Below are positions 8,024 through 19,055 of a stretch of 64,000 bases of DNA, one piece after another (position 1 is the first letter of the stretch; each line of letters begins with the position of its first letter). Source of the DNA: Dimorphilus gyrociliatus (Eukaryota; Animalia; Annelida); the NCBI GenBank assembly GCA_904063045.1, contig CAJFCJ010000001.1:2232001-2296000 (forward strand). Reading direction: 5' to 3'. The notes under the pieces are model-generated. The model ran no database searches. It saw only the letters and a list, made by a program, of their open reading frames with translations, and was not told where the DNA came from. The position numbers and the translations under genes are program-made.

Positions 8024-8744
8024 TACGTTCAAGATTTTATTCTCTCTCGTCCTATTTTCAAGCCTGAAGGTAACTGATATAAAAAAATTTCCAGATGACT
8101 TATTTATTGATTTGAAAATTCATAATTTGGAAATTATGCCAAGGAGATTTTTCCAAGTGCGGCTCAATCCACAACTTTTTTTTCAGAGTTTTATTATGGA
8201 AAGGTTTTGTATAGCAATTAAACAGGAGTGTAATTAGTCTTTTTCGATAACTTAATAATGATAGTCGTAGTAATTTGGCTTTGAAGTTGTCTATTTCTTT
8301 TTAGTTGATATTTTAGCATCAAAGTAGAAAATCAATAAGTGCTGTTTAATTCTCTTCTAAAGATAGCATTTAAAGTAAACTAAACTTCATCGCTTTCGAA
8401 TTCTGAGCCATAGAGTATGTTCATATTTCCTATTTTGTTTAATATCCTATAGGATGTTTGTGATAGGCTGATGTCTACTTGTACTGAAAAATGTATATTA
8501 AAATGACGGTCAAGTAGTGTATTACACATAGTGCAATAATAGGACATATTAACTAATAAACGCTTCTTTTGAGCCACTGACATCTTACATTACACAGAAT
8601 AAATGCATATTTTAGTTCTTATCAACGAATTCCTTTAACGAAAAAAGCATTGATATTGTTAGGAACCAGAGAGCAGACTATTACTATAGAATATAGAATG
8701 AAAGTGAGGAGCGTTCATGCTTTGACCGTCCAAACGCTTTACGC

Positions 8745-9576
8745 CTATTTCAGTTGACCACTATTAGCGATGGTGACAGGGGACTTGACTGATCCAGAAG
8801 AAGAACCTTCTGCCTCAATCTTTTTAACAACGTCCATACCATCAATAACATTACCAAAAACAACGTGTTTTCCATCGAGCCAGTCGGTCTTGATGGTGCA
8901 CAAGAAGAATTGTGAACCATTAGTGTTTGGTCCAGCGTTGGCCATGGATAGAACTCCTATTAGAATGCAAAAAAAAATTAATTAGAAAGTGTCATTAGAT
9001 TAGTTTGTCAAACGAACTTCCTGAACTAATTAAAGTCCATGAAGACTCATGTGTTAACCGCCTAACCTACATTTAGATGTATCGGTTTTTTTTTAAAGAT
9101 TACACTTTCACGTTTTATTGATTTTCGTTTGGTTTAAAGTTGGAACTGACTGTTCAATCTAAAGTTAATTCAAACTTCAAACAGAACTTTGATAAAATTG
9201 TCATTAGTGAAAATATTTACAATTTGTCTGTTTTTATACAATATGCATGTAGAAATGGCGCGCAGTCATGGCGGCCATTTTGTTACTAACCGGCTCCTGT
9301 ATGTTTAAGGGCGAAATTCTCGTCTTCGAATTTGTTCCCGTAGATGCTTTTGCCACCAGTGCCGTTGTGGTTGGTGAAGTCACCACCTTGGCACATGAAG
9401 CTTGGGATGACTCTGTGGAATTTGGAGCCCTTGTAGCCAAAACCTTTCTCGCCGGTGCACAATGCGCGGAAGTTTTCAGCTGTTTTTGGAACAACGTCTG
9501 ATCTTAGTTCCATCGTGATACGACCAGCAGGTTTCCCTCCAATTTCAATATCGAAGAAGCATTGAGGAAGAGACAT
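8745..9576 (-). CDS. PPIA: Cyclophilin A-type peptidyl-prolyl cis-trans isomerase, 165 aa; exons 9576-9291 and 8956-8745
   Basis: [39 protein letters not shown]...G|[20 protein letters not shown]...[10 protein letters not shown]. Phase-1 intron gives a 498-nt CDS. Confidence 0.97.
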
Positions 9577-9650
9577 TTTCAATGTATGTAGTGAGTAAAC
9601 TTGACGTTTGTCTTGTACCGGTACCGCTAGGAGTGGAAATTTTTAAGATA

Positions 9651-9661
9651 GGAAGTGACGT
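9651..9661 (+). promoter_or_regulatory. ETS-CRE composite motif (GGAAGTGACGT) in the cyclophilin/AKR divergent promoter
   Basis: Exact GGAAGTGACGT ~75 nt upstream of the cyclophilin ATG. Motif match only. Confidence 0.4.
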
Positions 9662-10150
9662 AGGTTGACCTCAATATCATTCAGTTTCGTAAAAAATATT
9701 TTTGTAAAATAAAAGCCTAAAATGAACTAAAATTAATTAAATTAAAAGTAATTTTCATTTGTAATAATTTACTAATTTGTCAAGTTGAACTGAAAAATTG
9801 ACCAATCACAAGACTCGTCACCAAGTTGATTCTTTACATGGCTCTTACAGATTGAATGCCTCTTTCCAAAATAAAAATAATTTTACTAATTATTTTTTAT
9901 AGAATACATTGTAACAAAATTTTTGAAAAAGGAAGCGATAAAGAGGATGTAGAATAAACTCTTCTAAAATGTTCATTATCAAAATATCAAAAAAATCTAT
10001 ACTCCGTACAGTCTTTATACCATAAAAATATTTTGTATGCTAAAATAAAGAATATCATATTTTACCATAAATACGAAAATGAACTCAATTTCTGAGCGAT
10101 AATTTTGCTATACATCTATCATAGAACTTTTCAAGTACCCAGTTAAAAAT

Positions 10151-11300
10151 ATGGGTGAAAATATTAAAATTGCAGAAAATCTAAGTTCAACCATTCGCTT
10201 AAATGATGGAGTAGATATGCCCTTATTTGGCCTTGGTGTTTGGCTTCTTAAGGGAGAAACTGCAGAGACTGCTATATGTCATGCGCTAAAGAACGGTTAC
10301 AAAATGCTTGACACTGCACAGTTTTACGAGTTAGCTTTTATAACTTTTATTACATTCATATGCAACAACCATCATACGATGGTATTATTAGTAATAATAT
10401 TAATTGTAGTAATTGATATCAAATTTTTGTATCTTCATTAAAGAAACGAAACACAAGTTGGTCGAGGTTTAAAGCTTTCTGGAATTGACAGAAAGGACAT
10501 TTTTTTCGTTACTAAAGTGTGGTATACAAGTCATGGTCGTGAAGGTTCCATAGAAACATTTAATGCCAGCCTTAAAAAGTTAAAAGCAATAACTTAAAAT
10601 CAAATTATACAGAGCTGATCATTTTATTGATTATTTAGATTAGGTACTGACTACATTGATTTGTACCTCATACACTCTCCTTATGGCGGTAAAGTATTGG
10701 AGACTTACGATACACTTTTGGAATTTAAATCACAGGGAAAAATAAGGTTCATTGCAACTATTTAAAACAAAGTGTTCTTAAAGCTTAAAATATATTTTTC
10801 TTTATCAAGATCTGTTGGAGTATCAAACTTTGGAATTCAACATTTAGAAGCATTGGAAAAAGCTGGGAGACCACTTCCGTCTGTTAATCAAATAGAATTG
10901 CATCCTTTCCAAAGAAAAGAGAAAATAGTAAAATATTGTAAGGAAAAAGGGATTACTGTAATGGGATATAGTCCATTAAGTAAAGGAAAATCATTAGATA
11001 AGCCCATGCTAAGTGAAATGTCTGCAAAGTACGGCAAAAACGTTGGTCAACTAATGATAAGATATAGTGTTCAAATGGGTTATATTACTATTCCGAAATC
11101 ACAAAACTTTGACAGAATTATCTCAAATACCGATGTTTTCGATTGGAGAATAAGTGATGAAGATATGAAAGTTCTTGTAAGTTTTATATTAAATTAATAA
11201 TATGGCAATATAAATATAAAATGAAACGGTTATTTAATAGAATAATTCGGAAGAAGAGAGCTGTACGTGGGACCCGACGGTGGAACCATGGATAAGCTAA
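10151..11300 (+). CDS. Aldo-keto reductase (AKR5/PGF-synthase/glyoxal-reductase-like), multi-exon
   Basis: LNDGVDMPLFGLGVW, DTAQFYE (Asp/Tyr), FVTKVW (Lys), LIHSP (His), GVSNFG, NQIELHP, IPKS; last exon ends WDPTVEPWIS* at 11300. Confidence 0.93.
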
Positions 11301-11452
11301 ATTGGCAAACTTGAAAGAAACGAGATAATACTTTATTTATCAGTTGATAAATGTCTAAAACAACGTGTAATCAAATCATTTTAGCTATACAAATAAAAGC
11401 AAAAGTATTAAAAGTTATTAAGGACATTAGTCGTTGTTTTCCTTAACCTTTT

Positions 11453-12871
11453 CTATTGCATTTGAAAACCTATGTTATCAGCACCTACTTCTGTCGGAGT
11501 TTTCATACCACTATGCCTTCGAATAATCCCAAAAGAACTTCTTCTAACAGTCATTTGTTCATTTACTTGTAGTTGACAACCATCCAGATACCTACTCACA
11601 GTATTAATGTCATGTTCAACTATATCAGAGCCAAGATCTTCTTCTTCTGGACTTAGTCTTAAACCTATGGTCCGATTTATAAGGTATAATAGAATAAAGC
11701 TTATAGAACCACTCCAACCTACAATGCAGACAATTGCCAGAACCTGTACACCTAATAGATAGAAACCTCCACCATGTGTTAAACCTGAACGACCGTCAGT
11801 AATTCTTTCAATTTTATCATCATCGCCAAAGATACCCACTGCTATCATTCCCCAGATTCCACCAATTCCATGGACAGCAAATGCTCCTACCGGGTCATCT
11901 ATCTTTAAGCGATCGAGTAATGGGCAAAAACTCACAACAAATAAGGCGCCAATTGCTCCGATCACTATAGACTCCCACGGTCTAACGATGGCACATGATG
12001 CTGTTATCGAAACTAATGAGCCAAGAATTGAGTTTACTAAATCTTCTATCATAAATTTCTTTTTATTAACAATAAAAGAATAAATTAGACCAGCCACCCC
12101 ACCACCAACAGAGGCGTTTATGGTTGTGACAGCCGATTTAGCCGCAAGTATCCACTTTCCTCCCGATATGCCAAAGGTACTTCCACAATTGAATCCTAAC
12201 CAACCCCACCACAGCATAAACATACCCACCAGTGCATTTGTTGGATTTCCAAGTTGTTTTTTGTTTTGCGAATCGTATCTTCCTCTTCTGGGACCAAGTA
12301 ACATTGCAGCAACAATAGCCGAAACAGCTCCAAGCAAATGCACACCTCCTGAACCTGCGATATCAACTACTCCCAAAGTTTTCAAAAACCCGTTACTAGC
12401 CCAAATCCAATGAGCGGGTATACAATAAACAACTGTATTTAAGAAAGAAAAGATAACATACGCTGTCAATTTCGTTCTCTCTGCCATGGCTCCTGAAACG
12501 ATAGTTGTTGCTGTAGTAGCAAACGACAATTGAAAAATAAATGTTGAGTAAATTTGTCCGATATCGCTTGACTCATCTCCATCTACTAAGAATTGACCAA
12601 CGCCAACAAATGCATTAGAATATTCCCCATCTCCAAAACTTAAACCGTAACCATAAGCCCAGTAAGTAATACCACCAAAAACTACATCTACTGCATTTTT
12701 TACCATAATGTTCACTTCATTTTTGGCTGACACGCATCCTGCCTCCAATAAGCCAAATCCTGATTGCATTGTAAAAATAATAAAGGATGATGTAAGAATC
12801 CACGTAGCGTCATCCCAAGACATGGCTTGTGCTTTCGTTGTTACGACTGGAATGAGAGTTGTGTTGTTCAT
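11453..12871 (-). CDS. amt: Ammonium transporter (invertebrate Amt), 472 aa, single coding exon
   Basis: MQSGFGLLEAG, FQLSFATTATTIVSGAMAER, DIAGSGGVH and DDPVGAFAVHG (twin His), GWLGFNCGS (Phe gate). Confidence 0.97.
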   Translation of the reverse strand: MNNTTLIPVVTTKAQAMSWDDATWILTSSFIIFTMQSGFGLLEAGCVSAKNEVNIMVKNAVDVVFGGITYWAYGYGLSFGDGEYSNAFVGVGQFLVDGDESSDIGQIYSTFIFQLSFATTATTIVSGAMAERTKLTAYVIFSFLNTVVYCIPAHWIWASNGFLKTLGVVDIAGSGGVHLLGAVSAIVAAMLLGPRRGRYDSQNKKQLGNPTNALVGMFMLWWGWLGFNCGSTFGISGGKWILAAKSAVTTINASVGGGVAGLIYSFIVNKKKFMIEDLVNSILGSLVSITASCAIVRPWESIVIGAIGALFVVSFCPLLDRLKIDDPVGAFAVHGIGGIWGMIAVGIFGDDDKIERITDGRSGLTHGGGFYLLGVQVLAIVCIVGWSGSISFILLYLINRTIGLRLSPEEEDLGSDIVEHDINTVSRYLDGCQLQVNEQMTVRRSSFGIIRRHSGMKTPTEVGADNIGFQMQ

Positions 12872-13756
12872 GTTAGCACAATCTGAAAAATGCAGGGTAA
12901 TGACAGTTTACTCCTCTTAGATTAATTTTCCTTTTGTTCCAGATTGGGGACCACTTTGAAGCATATAAACAAAGAAACATGATACGTTGTCATGAGGTAA
13001 TGAGTTTTTTTCCAATTGAAAGAACAAACTAGCAAATTAACAGGTATAGCATGTATTGAAGTACAAAATTTCTTGTCCAGTGAAATTACCTCACACACTT
13101 GAGATCTTTTATTAATGAAAAAGAATTATCAAAGATAGTAATTATAGAAATAATTAACAGTTTATGAAAGCACCTAAGATGGAGATTAAGTTTATTGAAC
13201 CTCTATTGTAATTTTCATTAATGTATCCTCAAAGTAAATCTTCTTTTCAGTTAAATTACAAACATCGACATTTCTATTAAGGCCATTCATATGGCAATTA
13301 TTTTTAAAGATAGATATTTTTAAGTAATGCTGCAGAAAAGACAATGCTTCTACCCATTAGGAAAACTCTTTAATTTAATATAAAATTTATTGATTTTTTT
13401 TTTCAAATCATAGTATCATTAGGAAAAAATAGGTCTAAAGCGTTATGTACAAGGGGCAAAAGGACATAGTAAACAATTATGCGTAACATTTACATATAAT
13501 ATTTAATAAAGCATATATCCAGTAAAATATAAACGTATTCCTTAAAAAAAGAAAAAAGCAGCGATATTCTTTTCTCTTCATAAATTATAAAACGTTTAAC
13601 TAAAAAATGGATAATTAAGATTGTTTTTTTTAAAAAAAAATGGAATGAATAACAAAAAGTGAAAGTAATAGGGAAAGAGATGTTTCAATGAACAAAACGT
13701 AAAAATAAAAAAAAATCTAAATGAAGTTCAAGGACTTTTCGTTTTAAAAAAAATGC

Positions 13757-16700
13757 CTAACACAAAAATTCTTCTTTCTGTGATACATCGGGTTGTCCAG
13801 TTTGTGTTTGTACAAGGGCGTAATTTGCATCATCAAAATTTTCAGCACCCTTAGCTTCATTTGTCAAGTATTCTCCCTTATTCTTGGAGAAGTAACGGCA
13901 CGTGAGGAAGATGATAATAATGATTAGTAATAATACTCCTCCCAAAATGCCTGTACAAATAACAAGAGCCATTTTAATAATCTAAATTTGAAGTGAAAAA
14001 CATTTTTAAGACTATTATTTTCTTTCAAAAGACAACACTTTGCGATAGAAATACTGGGAAAGAGGCTAGGAAAATGAGAAAGAGATAAAGTGACAATTGA
14101 ATTCAAAGCGTATATAGAACTCTTTTCCATTTTAGTAATTCATCCATACCAGATTATTCCTAACGAGCATCACCGTTTAGCAATAATAATGACTGAGAAC
14201 GAAAAAAGACAACATATAAAGCAGTTAGTTTAAGCAACATACCAGCTAAAACAGCTTTTTCGCTATCGCTTAGTTCGGTATGTAATAAATCAAGTTTGCT
14301 AGTAGGAGTAGGTGTAAAACTTGACATTGTTACTCGGCTATGCCTGATCTCTTTCGGATCGGGAGGATGTGTTACCTCCTCAATCCCACAAGCATCCTCT
14401 TTTATACTACCTAATCAACAAACGATTAGAAATAAGCGTTAGAAAGCAACATGTTAATCAAGTTAATCATAAATCAAAGCACATTTCAACTAATTAACAA
14501 TGCAAAAAAGTTAGTAGCGGCAGCAGTTTCGAGAAGCAAAATTATCTATCGGCAGCCTAATTCTGGATTTCTAAACTTTTTAATACCTCCTAAAATCGCT
14601 TTTTCACTGTCGGACAATTCAGCCGGCTCGACATTTATATAAAACGATGTTGTTGTATTATAATTAATTGTTGGAGTAGGCCTAAATTCTGGATCGTCTG
14701 GTTTATGGGTAACTTCTTCAAAACCGCACATATCTTCTCTAACTTGGCCTTAAATTTTTCATTAACAAAATGATAAGTTGAATAAAAATAGATATAATGT
14801 AAAGCTATGCAAACTTTTATCGTTTTATCGATAATAGAAAAATTTAATAATATGCAAATAGAAAGGCTGTTACCTTCTGGAAAAACAACGACATTGTTTG
14901 GTGCTGGGTCTTGGAAGAGGTCTTTAAAAGGGAAAACATTGTCAAATCTTGCTCTGAACAGACAACCTTGCAAGCCGTCTGTTGACTTCATGTCGCTTGT
15001 TCTACCAAACCAAATATATTTAGGATTATGCAATCTTGTATCAGCATCAGGAGTAAGATCTGTCCATTCATGGGTTTTTGCTTGGTAATCATCTACCTTT
15101 ATGATTAATTTACGTCCTTTATTTGTTCTTCTGACGTTAACGACGTGTTGCTGGCCATTGGCTAAATCAACATCGGGTATATCCAAATTCACGTTTTCTC
15201 TTGGACCAAAGCCAACTTCGATACCAACTTGAATACCTCCGTTGTTGTTCATTTCAACACTGATATATTCTGGTTTGTCTTTATTACCATTTGTAATCTA
15301 TGGAATAACGTATCATCGTTTGAAACTTATTATATTTTTATTTTGTTAATATATAAATACCTGCATGAGAATTCCTTTCTTATCTTGGGTAGAAAATCCA
15401 ATAATAATTTGTTCTTCATCAGTCGCAATATTACCAGCTTCCGTATCAAATTGATATCGAACCCACCAACTGTTACGTAAATTGACACCCACTTCTCTTC
15501 CGCACGCCCATCCTCGATATGGGGTATAGGCACAATCGCATGTATAGTGGGAATAGAATTCCTTGCAAACGCCCTCATTCAAGCAGGGACTTGAAGCGCA
15601 TTTTGGATGGCAGCCAGCTGCTACACCATATGTAAATTCTCCTCTTTCAACGGCTCCTCTCATGTCCATTACTTTTCCATTTACCATTAAAGCCCTAATA
15701 CAGCCAACAAAACCATCTCTGTAATCTACCGAAGCTCCAACAACGAGCTTAGAATCCAACTCTAAAGTTTTAAAGCCCTGATCTGTCGGCTCATCTAGAG
15801 TTTTTAATGATTGTTGATCAATTCTAAGAACTGCTTGTTTACGGTTTCTTTCAACGTGAACTGTATGCCATTGGTTATCATTAAGTGGATAGGCTGTAGT
15901 CTTTTCCAAGGTTTGAATTCCATTTCCAACATCGAATCTAAAGTAATACATTTAAATTATTTAACAAGATAATCTTTTTCTTATAACTTACCGGAAATGA
16001 ATCGAGTTTCCGAAGAACAATTTGATTTCTATGAAGTGATGAGGTCCGGTGTTGTGAATGAGAATACCGTCAAAAGCTGTTGTCTTAAACTGGAAGCGAA
16101 TATCGCCGGATGTAGCAGCATCAAAAGTATCAAATTCAACGGTTGCGTCGGCTTTCCTAAATGTGACAGTGTTATCGAAAATATTATCTCCATAACATCG
16201 GAGTTCGCCAACTTGATATTTTCCCCATGTTCCATCGTTTACCATTCCAGTACCTCCAAATCTTACTTCCATAACGGGCAAATGCTCTTTTTGAGTTAGG
16301 AAACCTTCATCCGTTTCTACAGTACTATCATCAGCATCACAATTGCATTTTGGATTGTTGTTTCTGCAATTATTATCAATACCACACTTACATTTACCAC
16401 TTCCAGGCGAAGCTCCTCCCCAGTAGTTCATATTCAAGTTTGTCCTTCCAATCCACCAACCAAAGGTTGGAATATTTGGATCTGTTGAACCAGAGTTGGT
16501 CAATAGCTTCGCTCTCTTACACCTCCACTTAATATTCTGTTCGCATCTGTCAGCTCTAGCGACTAATTCATCAAATACTTCACGAGCAACTGGAAACTTA
16601 GTTGGATCATTACGATCAGAGTATCTTATTCTTTGAACAAATGATCCTGGTGAATCAAAGCCATCAACCAAGTGCTCGCCCATGTTATCGTGATATATTA

Positions 16701-19055
16701 TAGTCATGGCAAGATTTCGACTATGTTCAAAAACACATGTTACTGAAATTGGTGAGAGAGGACCAGAACCATCAATATCAATTTTAGTATCTAAATCAGG
16801 AATAGTAGGATTTAAAAGACGAACTTCTTCACAGCTTACTAAATATTTTGATCTATGGCATACAGAACCCTCATAGCCAGTTGCAGAACAGTCACAATCA
16901 AACATATTGTAGTCTTGGGTACAAATACCGTTATGCTCACATGGGTTGGGATCACATCTATCTTGAAGACTGCAAGAACCATTAATTGCTTCGAAAATCC
17001 TCTCTTCAGGTATATTAGTAACAATAGCTCCCTGAATTCTTAAAAACCTCATACAACCTAGAAAACCAGTATAATCCAAGTTCAAGTTGCTATCTTCAGC
17101 TCCACCTCCAATATAATATGTATCGTCAGTGGTGAAAGATAGTTGTCTTTCAGAAGAATCAGATCTTCCATCAATAGTGATATTGACTTTACCAAGTTCT
17201 GAACTGGATGGAGCTGATAGAATATCAACTATGACATCGTGCCAAAGACCGTCAGTAAAATAACGATGACTAGTTAAAGGATCTAAGTTTGCGATTACGC
17301 TTGATATTTCCGGATTGCTATCAGATTTAACTCTATACTCAAGATATCCCTCACTATCAATCCTCATAACAACATAGCCACCAGAATCTAATTTAGTAGC
17401 AAATAGCAGTCCATTCTTATTATAGGACCTGAAAGAGAAACCAACTTGCATTCTCAACTTGTTATCAGAGGCTCCAGCTGATAATTTTAAATGAGATTCT
17501 ACAGTTGGAAAAGTAAACGGTACTATACTTTCAACCAGACACGTTCCTAAGCTAATGTCTCCAATGGCTTGAAATCGTTTTTGGCCCATTCTCATATCCT
17601 TTATCATATTCATATAATTAAACCAAACATTTTCCATACAACCAGTAAAGTTTTTCTTGCTGTACAATACTTTTCCAGGTTGAAGAAAGGAATCAATACC
17701 TCCCAAATTAATCGATCTATCCAAGTCAAGTTGTAAAAATTCTCCATTTGTTATATTCTGTATTGTCAATCTGTCAACGGTGAAGTTAACTTCTCTGTTC
17801 ATACGGCTAATTTCAACATCATGCCATTGATTATCATCCAAGAGTGATCCGGCTCTCATGCTTGTTACGCCACTTTGAGTAGCTGTAGATCCCAAATCGA
17901 TATGAAAGTGTAATCGTCCCCTTACGAGCTCTAAAATTACGTAATCGCCTTGATTACCATCAGCGTAAAATATAAGACCATCGGAATGTAAAGTTCTGAA
18001 ACGAAGTTTCAGTCGATCGCTTTTCGTTTGAACATATTGTGTTTGACCAGAAATGTCGTAAGTTATTCTTGTTTTACCATCAAAACTTCCTGCTTCACCA
18101 TCAAATCTACATCCATATACTTCAACTCTCATTGATAAAAATTGATTCCATCTAAGTACAAACCAAAGAGTTGACAAAAATCAATTTATGTATTTTATCT
18201 CAATTACCTTTGCGGATTGAAACGAATATATCTGGCTACGAGAGGATAACTTAACTTGTTATATTTAACTGTATCGTCATCCAAATTTCCATCAAAAGAG
18301 AAAGGTGTGCCGTACTTGTTAGTATAATCACTCCACGTTTTATTATCGCTTGAATATTGCAGGTGGTACTCTGTTACGAATTCTCCAGAACCTCGACGGC
18401 CTTGGGTCGCAACCCTTGTCACAACATGTCGATATCCCAAATCTATTCCGAGATGCTGCAGTTTGTTCGGTTCTCCAGCAGTCCAAGCACCGCCCCCTAA
18501 ATTTTAACAATATGTTTGTATACTCAATAAATAAATATAAAGAATTCATGTTTTATTGGCAAATCAAAACAGTTTAATTGTTTTGAATTAGTCAGCTTTG
18601 CCCAAATATCTGATAGGCTATGCAAAAAAACACATTATAGGTACATATATCTAGAAGATGCCTAATTTGGTGGTAAAGTACCTATAAGGACCTTATTTAG
18701 GATTAGAGTTCGCTAATAACACCTGCACATAAAATTTCAAGGTAACACTTAAATATTTAGCGATTGGTTCACCTTTATATCCATTTAGGCGACCGTACCG
18801 AGCATCTCTGGCAATATTTGTGGAAGATGTTGACCACATATTTCTATCTGGGATATATTCCTTTTCGATTCCGACGGCTACAGCATACCTACATGGCTCA
18901 GTCATATCAATGTCTGGAAAAAAATATTTATCATCAATGGTGAATATGTGCAAATTGCAGTTCAAATGAATTATATTCAAAGACTTACCAGATTTGACAA
19001 CAATAATAGCTAAACTTAAGATTATTACTTTAAAACACATTTTTAAACGCTTCAT
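13757..19055 (-). CDS. Nrx-IV: Neurexin-IV / contactin-associated protein (Caspr/CNTNAP) orthologue, multi-exon
   Basis: Signal peptide, F5/8C discoidin ([16 protein letters not shown]...MRVEVYGC), LamG-LamG-EGF-fibrinogen-like-LamG-EGF-LamG, TM, band-4.1 motif ([10 protein letters not shown]), C-terminus EEFLC. Confidence 0.96.

Follow-up and report, generated by a model that had tools for sequence, protein, structure and literature searches.

Two homologous stalk exons in the Neurexin-IV/Caspr gene of the annelid Dimorphilus gyrociliatus and their probable use one at a time

How does the Neurexin-IV/Caspr gene of the annelid Dimorphilus gyrociliatus use the two homologous exons, here called A and B, that lie side by side between its last laminin G (LamG) exon and its transmembrane (TM) exon? 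The gene, the single Neurexin-IV/Caspr gene of this dinophilid, is on the reverse strand of a 64,000-nucleotide stretch of contig CAJFCJ010000001.1 (assembly GCA_904063045.1, positions 2,232,001 to 2,296,000), which we refer to as the window. We suggest that a juxtamembrane exon encoding the stalk of the protein was duplicated in tandem in a lineage-specific event, that both copies are functional, and that most messenger RNAs (mRNAs) carry exactly one of them, a reading to which we assign a probability of about 0.62. Tandem-duplicated alternative exons are already known; the stalk is a new site for such a pair in Neurexin-IV in the literature that we searched, and is implicit in one RefSeq annotation. 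The gene has eight constitutive-looking exons in addition to the duplicated stalk exon, and the parts that matter here are as follows, in window coordinates.

13757-19055, minus strand: Neurexin-IV/Caspr coding span, with the start codon at 19055 and the stop codon at 13759-13757
14874-15297, minus strand: exon of the last LamG domain (LamG4), with a Laminin_G_2 match and one cysteine, in a GC-L-F motif
14749-14873, minus strand: intron 1, 125 nt, upstream of exon A; A-rich just before the AG in D. gyrociliatus and in a dinophilid relative
14587-14748, minus strand: stalk exon A, 162 nt, phase 1-1; the ancestral type, with EFRPTPT and an N-T-T sequon
14411-14586, minus strand: intron 2, 176 nt, between A and B; weakly conserved
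14434-14444, minus strand: conserved TTCTAACGCTT word, branch-point-like, with CTAAT after it and the exon B acceptor 34 nt downstream
14243-14410, minus strand: stalk exon B, 168 nt, phase 1-1; the derived copy, with IRHSRVT
13951-14242, minus strand: intron 3, 292 nt, between B and the TM exon
13757-13950, minus strand: last coding exon, with the TM helix, a 4.1-type motif and the C-terminus KEEFLC followed by the stop codon; 89% identical to the relative

All searches were made exon by exon, from the exon translations. Among these, Pfam found F5/8-C, Laminin_G and EGF: the N-terminal discoidin domain is present (PF00754, E 6.6e-16, in the open reading frame (ORF) 18204-18440 inside exon 3, 18208-18496), and three large exons match Laminin_G_2, Laminin_G_1 and EGF, corresponding to four LamG domains and two interspersed EGF-like domains. 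Pfam returned no family on the stalk exons or on the TM exon. The C-terminal part consists of a single TM helix followed by a juxtamembrane motif of the glycophorin C/Neurexin IV/paranodin type, which we take to be 4.1-binding and which is also found in the Platynereis-type, Owenia and Lingula orthologs. The corresponding 833-aa exon product of the relative, which is 85% identical to that of the window, matches proteins of the neurexin-4/CNTNAP family with E values of 0 to 1e-137, including Platynereis-type (63%), Lamellibrachia, Owenia, mollusc and arthropod neurexin-4 and vertebrate CNTNAP. The domain content, the TM helix with its tail motif, and best matches named neurexin-4 or CNTNAP2 together identify the gene, on sequence grounds, as a Neurexin-IV/Caspr ortholog.

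Exons A and B are clearly homologous. The LamG4 exon ends at 14874 in VVFPE plus one base, with the donor directly after it, and each stalk exon opens with the two bases that complete the split Gly codon and closes with one spare base. The boundaries read aag/GCC and GAG/gtatt for exon A, and tag/GTA and CTG/gtatg for exon B. At the protein level, 23 of 55 residues are identical (42%, E 1e-13); 16 of these 23 are encoded by different codons, and the proportion of synonymous differences (pS) between A and B is 0.93. Thus, the likeness is held at the protein level and the duplication is old, rather than a recent copy of DNA. A profile made from A and B matched only these two exons in a six-frame search of the whole 77.9 Mb assembly, and the G+C content of exon B is 0.42, compared with 0.21-0.31 in the three flanking introns. 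An earlier reading of the same DNA, made from the letters alone (the sequence-only reading), had named the gene as Neurexin-IV/Caspr and described a tandem pair of homologous, symmetric phase-1 exons between the last LamG exon and the TM exon, with an N-x-T sequon in A (NTT) that B lacks. The gene name, the coordinates, phases and translations, and the sequon difference are all borne out, and the duplication itself is real, given the homology, the like lengths (162 and 168 nt), the same phase and the intact AG/GT sites. Its further statement that exon B is absent from the ORF track is right in part, as an ATG-started ORF (14160-14327) covers the 3´ half.

Is exon B a selected exon? In an exhaustive search, the A/B profile picked up one A-like and one B-like short ORF in Logan assemblies; the two lie on a single 22.8 kb contig (L003, Logan assembly SRR23372228, from the series of runs SRR23372216-232). 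Contigs from four further runs are identical in sequence to L003, and they are therefore counted as one relative; the comparative evidence for exon B comes from this one relative genome. The contig is syntenic with the window, carrying Caspr, an ammonium transporter, an aldo-keto reductase and a cyclophilin, and gene order is kept (window 8700-19055, L003:4900-15100) although the introns are randomized. The relative has lost the intron between discoidin exon 3 and the following big exon, giving the single 833-aa ORF mentioned above. Across the big exon, the proportion of nonsynonymous differences (pN) is 0.10, and synonymous sites between the two species are saturated (pS 0.6-0.9). The stalk region of the relative is laid out as follows.

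L003:8626-8787: exon A´, 162 nt, in the same order and phase as in the window
L003:8937-9101: exon B´, 165 nt, in the same order and phase as in the window
L003:9446 onward: TM exon of the relative

The introns around A´ and B´ are 104, 149 and 344 nt long. DNA identity between the two species is at the level of shuffled sequence in intron 1 (z 1.4) and intron 3 (z 0.6), and is somewhat raised in intron 2 (z 3.2). For the exons, z is 9.5 for A (protein 92% identical, pN 0.04, pS 0.91), 5.1 for B (62%, pN 0.29, pS 0.66) and 12.8 for the TM exon (pN 0.07, pS 0.61). Exons B and B´ differ by one in-frame codon indel, with omega ~0.23 at saturated divergence, and the exon B donor, GTATGT, is kept. 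Overall, B changes at three to seven times the rate of the remaining protein, and conservation inside it is concentrated in the N-terminal 16 and the C-terminal 13 residues (LHTELS.S.KA.LA), with a middle that is free to change. Because the open frame, the splice sites and pN below pS are kept while introns 1 and 3 have been randomized, we regard exon B, by this comparison, as a spliced coding exon under purifying selection that is three to seven times weaker than that on its neighbors. The sequence-only reading had treated exon B as a genuine exon and had named decay in relatives, along with a lack of splicing, among the observations that would count against its proposal; an open ortholog stands at the same place in the one relative genome, with frame and splice sites intact and no decay.

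Whether one copy or both enter the mRNA is suggested first by the cysteines. Their number in the mature ectodomain is 31 if no stalk exon is included, 32 if one is and 33 if both are. In LamG1, 2 and 3 of the window protein, a GC is followed by a second C ~30 residues on. The LamG4 exon has only the GC cysteine; the next Cys is 36 residues on, in the stalk exon, and A and B supply one each. In keeping with what is generally known of LamG domains, the stalk-exon Cys would close the C-terminal disulfide of LamG4. The number of ectodomain cysteines is even only with exactly one stalk exon, which favors use of one at a time. In addition, the conserved ends of B must abut LamG4 and the TM helix, so that a B that always follows A is hard to explain. 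These features lead us to lean toward predominant either/or use of A and B. In this model, either stalk exon would supply the last Cys of the LamG4 disulfide, a linker of ~30 residues and the hydrophobic residues with which the TM helix begins. With exon A, the stalk would be the ancestral one, bearing the conserved N-glycosylation sequon; with exon B, it would be a more rapidly changing one that lacks a sequon and carries a conserved basic R-H-(S/K)-R-V-T motif.

The stalk exon in other spiralians bears on both the origin and the use of the pair. Platynereis-type and other annelid transcripts contain one A-type stalk, REDMCGFEE(V/Y)TH...(F/Y)RPTPT...N-x-T...LLGG. The Owenia and Patella loci have one A-like copy between the LamG4 and TM exons. 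On the basis of these single A-like exons, A is the ancestral copy and B the derived one. An annelid metagenome contig (L009) shows one stalk copy within 2.8 kb but ends short of the TM exon and so does not bear on copy number, and the Lamellibrachia gene model ends at the contig end. In a tree of ~54 columns, B and B´ form a clade (99/99) placed with annelid and mollusc sequences, and B shares ELSDSEKA with dinophilid A. The duplication is older than the split from the relative, from which the window is separated by saturated synonymous sites; under constant rates, arithmetic from dN would make it about 2.4 times as old as the divergence between the two dinophilid genomes.

Two species outside the annelids have two tandem copies at this place, also between the LamG4 and TM exons and also in phase 1-1.

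L015:14299-14445 (147 nt) and 15316-15459 (144 nt): stalk exons of the nemertean Tubulanus polymorphus (OZ123231.1)
L016:16215-16370 (156 nt) and 16762-16908 (147 nt): stalk exons of the brachiopod Lingula anatina (GCA_001039355.2, LFEI02000531.1), with AG/GT sites

In Tubulanus, the RefSeq isoforms X1 and X2 (XP_074652126.1 and XP_074652127.1; 1317 and 1316 aa) differ exactly in the stalk. X1 uses the first stalk exon and X2 the second, so that the two are annotated as alternatives. The layout is that of the dinophilids, with one Cys per copy and the N-x-T sequon only in the first copy, parallel to dinophilid A versus B. However, Tubulanus belongs to another phylum, its copies group apart from the B clade, and it has longer introns, with ~870 nt separating the two copies. 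Lingula also has two intact tandem stalk exons, but its RefSeq protein holds only the downstream copy; the upstream copy, ~390 nt away, is intact, has one Cys and is unannotated. The two Tubulanus copies share VLHPP, and the two Lingula copies share DF.ES.CG. Since the copies of each species have lineage-specific residues in common, the Tubulanus, Lingula and dinophilid duplications are probably separate, or the copies have been locally homogenized. A single ancient duplication shared with Tubulanus and Lingula was considered and rejected, given the separate B clade and the derived residues that each species has of its own, in a tree of only these ~54 columns. The search of orthologous spiralian loci that the sequence-only reading had proposed thus gives one copy in Owenia and Patella, and two tandem copies in Tubulanus and Lingula. 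Four long proteins (P0007, P0015, P0028 and P0037; 524-1998 aa) also match the stalk profile, in 6-24 stretches each, and are probably low-complexity or repeat sequence.

The splice sites of the pair are good. The same 11-mer, TTCTAACGCTT, is found 32 nt upstream of B´ in the relative, and of 500 shuffles only 6 gave a shared word of this length anywhere; the 11-mer has the look of a strong branch point. HOW, a STAR protein, controls the Neurexin-IV switch of the fly (PMC11893892), and TTCTAAC...CTAAT upstream of B resembles STAR-protein sites (ACUAAY...UAAY), but without the first A; a plain branch point is a more economical reading of the word than a STAR/HOW site. Exon A has the weaker-looking 3´ splice site, with an A-rich tract before the AG in both species. 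Longer introns are common around regulated exons. The introns flanking A and B (125, 176 and 292 nt) are longer than four of the five other introns of the gene (54-75 nt), the exception being one of 275 nt, and longer than the median intron of the D. gyrociliatus genome, 66 bp (PMC7854359), a further point in favor of either/or use.

Several observations weigh against one-at-a-time use, and they concern both expression and mechanism. The searches for transcripts used the A/B profile, word searches with the 833-aa exon of the relative, the LamG4 exon and the TM exon, and cluster listings. They covered products of 35-110, 113-359 and 458-1457 aa and the 50% cluster representatives, in a collection that does not include the ORFs of the window itself; the matches were all genomic ORFs of the relative, and neither a dinophilid transcript nor junction evidence was among them. 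The fast evolution of B also fits a minor or dispensable exon. The A-B intron is 176 nt long in the window and 149 nt in the relative, and its branch point lies ~115-140 nt from the donor. At this length steric exclusion cannot operate; given its strong branch point and a pyrimidine tract, the intron seems fully able to be spliced, and a genome that defines short introns would favor splicing of A to B. The donors of the stalk region (GTATTA, GTATGT and GTAACA) include no U12-type sites. Pairing between introns, as predicted by RNAduplex, is no stronger than in shuffles (z 0.2 to 2.8 on the weak side, in two species and with low power), and the inverted repeats in 13900-14900 are short A/U helices that are neither nested nor conserved as pairs. 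Finally, A and B are both divisible by 3, such that an mRNA with both exons or with neither keeps its reading frame and would not be removed by nonsense-mediated decay (NMD). In sum, none of steric hindrance, U2/U12 incompatibility, a frame shift with NMD, or competing RNA pairing was detected for A/B, and nothing visible in cis forbids the joining of A to B. Given that no structural device enforcing exclusivity was found, the choice between the two would probably be made by trans-acting factors. The mutual exclusivity proposed by the sequence-only reading is therefore favored indirectly: cysteine parity, the conserved ends of B and the Tubulanus and Lingula models speak for it, but a device that would enforce it was not found.

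Other readings of the locus have to be set beside this one. It is possible, although in our judgment unlikely, that A is in effect always included, while B is a minor cassette, rare or additive, that drifts under relaxed constraint, with no true switch. The gap in protein identity (62% for B compared with 92% for A) and in pN (0.29 compared with 0.04) would be expected from such an exon, as would the lack of a copy B in Owenia, Patella and the Platynereis-type transcripts. An omega that is still ~0.23 at saturated divergence is harder to reconcile with relaxed constraint, as is the fact that both species, with their introns otherwise randomized, have kept B open along with its phase, splice sites and branch point, and it is exon A, not B, that has the weaker-looking 3´ splice site.

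We regard as more doubtful still that A and B are constitutively included together, giving a doubled stalk of ~110 residues without alternative splicing. All of the splice sites are good, the A-B intron has its conserved strong branch point, both exons are in frame and no exclusivity device was found, and genomes with short introns splice by intron definition (PMC7854359), all of which would allow this outcome. Yet a protein with both exons has an odd number of ectodomain cysteines, and the LamG4-completing N-terminus and TM-starting C-terminus that B has kept would be pointless in it; moreover, the Tubulanus and Lingula models of the same layout carry one copy each. That B is a decaying relic, open by chance, is very improbable: no transcript shows exon B and a complete protein is possible without it, but with ~8% stop codons in intron-like composition, a 55-codon open frame has a chance of ~1% per lineage, and both lineages keep B open. 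Its AG/GT sites are present, its one indel preserves the frame, pN is far lower than pS, and its G+C content resembles that of an exon.

Alternative use of A and B, which we prefer, has parallels in known systems. In arthropods, as described for Drosophila, exons 3 and 4 of Neurexin-IV are mutually exclusive between glia and neurons, in a manner that depends on HOW and Cdk12 (PMC3245913; PMC11893892). The family is the same, and so is the type of event, in that both cases involve tandem-duplicated ectodomain exons of equal or like length with either/or use. However, the arthropod exons cover the central part of the discoidin domain (residues ~52-132) and alter Wrapper binding, whereas the sequence encoded by A or B runs from the end of LamG4 through the stalk into the first residues of the TM helix. 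Equal-length isoform pairs of a spider, tephritid flies and a shrimp (P0075/P0183, P0188/P0189 and P0203/P0212) differ only at discoidin residues ~52-132, and the exon 3/4 switch of the fly is thus common to chelicerates, crustaceans and insects. The discoidin region of the window gene consists of single exons, in agreement with the earlier suggestion that the dinophilid pair would be a switch at a different site. The intron between discoidin exons 2 and 3 (18497-18771, minus strand) is the one of 275 nt, compared with 54-75 nt for the other constitutive introns, and it sits where arthropods carry their alternative pair; by eye, no second exon copy is visible in it. More broadly, substitutions of tandem-duplicated exons such as FGFR2 IIIb/IIIc (PMC9013439; PMC9741552) resemble A/B in that homologous neighbors of like length and phase make a local change in the protein. 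Many well-studied pairs are exclusive by frame and NMD, by steric hindrance or by competing RNA structures, in contrast to A/B, for which none of these is detectable.

What might the two stalks do differently? The sequon in A is NTT in the window and NAT in the relative, and N-x-T is found in most other spiralian stalks, whereas B has no N-x-S/T sequon in the window or the relative. Where A has F-R-P-T-P-T, B has a basic R-H-S-R-V-T (window) or R-H-K-R-V-T (relative). The minimal proprotein-convertase consensus is R-x-x-R, and the full one is R-x-K-R; the RHSR and RHKR of B would fit the minimal form in the window and the full form in the relative, making this a putative cleavage site. Just ahead of the Gly that the two stalks share, exon A ends in a G and exon B in an A, in the window and in the relative alike, a difference predicted to change the pattern of small residues where the TM helix begins. 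These contrasts suggest that the A and B stalks may differ in function, and it is a reasonable hypothesis that A/B could exchange a tether that is glycosylated for one that is cleavable or packs differently. The sequence-only reading had raised the possibility that the two forms separate septate-junction from neuron-glia isoforms. A broader proposal, that the stalk exon is a recurrent duplication hot spot in spiralians that switches between sequon-bearing and sequon-free forms, with a convertase site in B that would decide whether the ectodomain is tethered or shed, seems to us speculative and rather unlikely as a whole. We also considered a tail-less isoform made by read-through past exon B (14160-14242, minus strand), where the frame in the window stays open for 27 codons beyond the exon B donor and encodes a hydrophobic stretch; this candidate was rejected, as the relative has a stop after 4 codons (L003:9102-9116).

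Neurexin-IV/Caspr organizes septate and paranodal junctions and neuron-glia contact. If A and B are indeed alternatives, the gene would have a second switch point, at the membrane-proximal stalk, that has arisen more than once in spiralians, and splicing would tune the tether as well, in its glycosylation, its length, its possible cleavage and the way the TM helix begins its first turn. Such a pair would also offer a testable handle on isoform function in a compact annelid model with stage-resolved RNA sequencing, and a useful case of an exon pair that lacks the usual cis devices for exclusivity. If instead the two are included together, or B is marginal, this is an ordinary exon duplication. 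What interests us most about the Neurexin-IV stalk duplication is that it recurs in three spiralian phyla.

One minor observation concerns the other end of the last coding exon. The C-terminus is KEEFLC in the window (13757-13775, minus strand) and KEEYLC in the relative (L003:9619-9639), and other spiralian orthologs end in KKEWFI, KKEYYI or KREYFL. The C-terminal residue of the dinophilid proteins is thus a Cys, in place of the usual hydrophobic residue of a PDZ-ligand-like tail.

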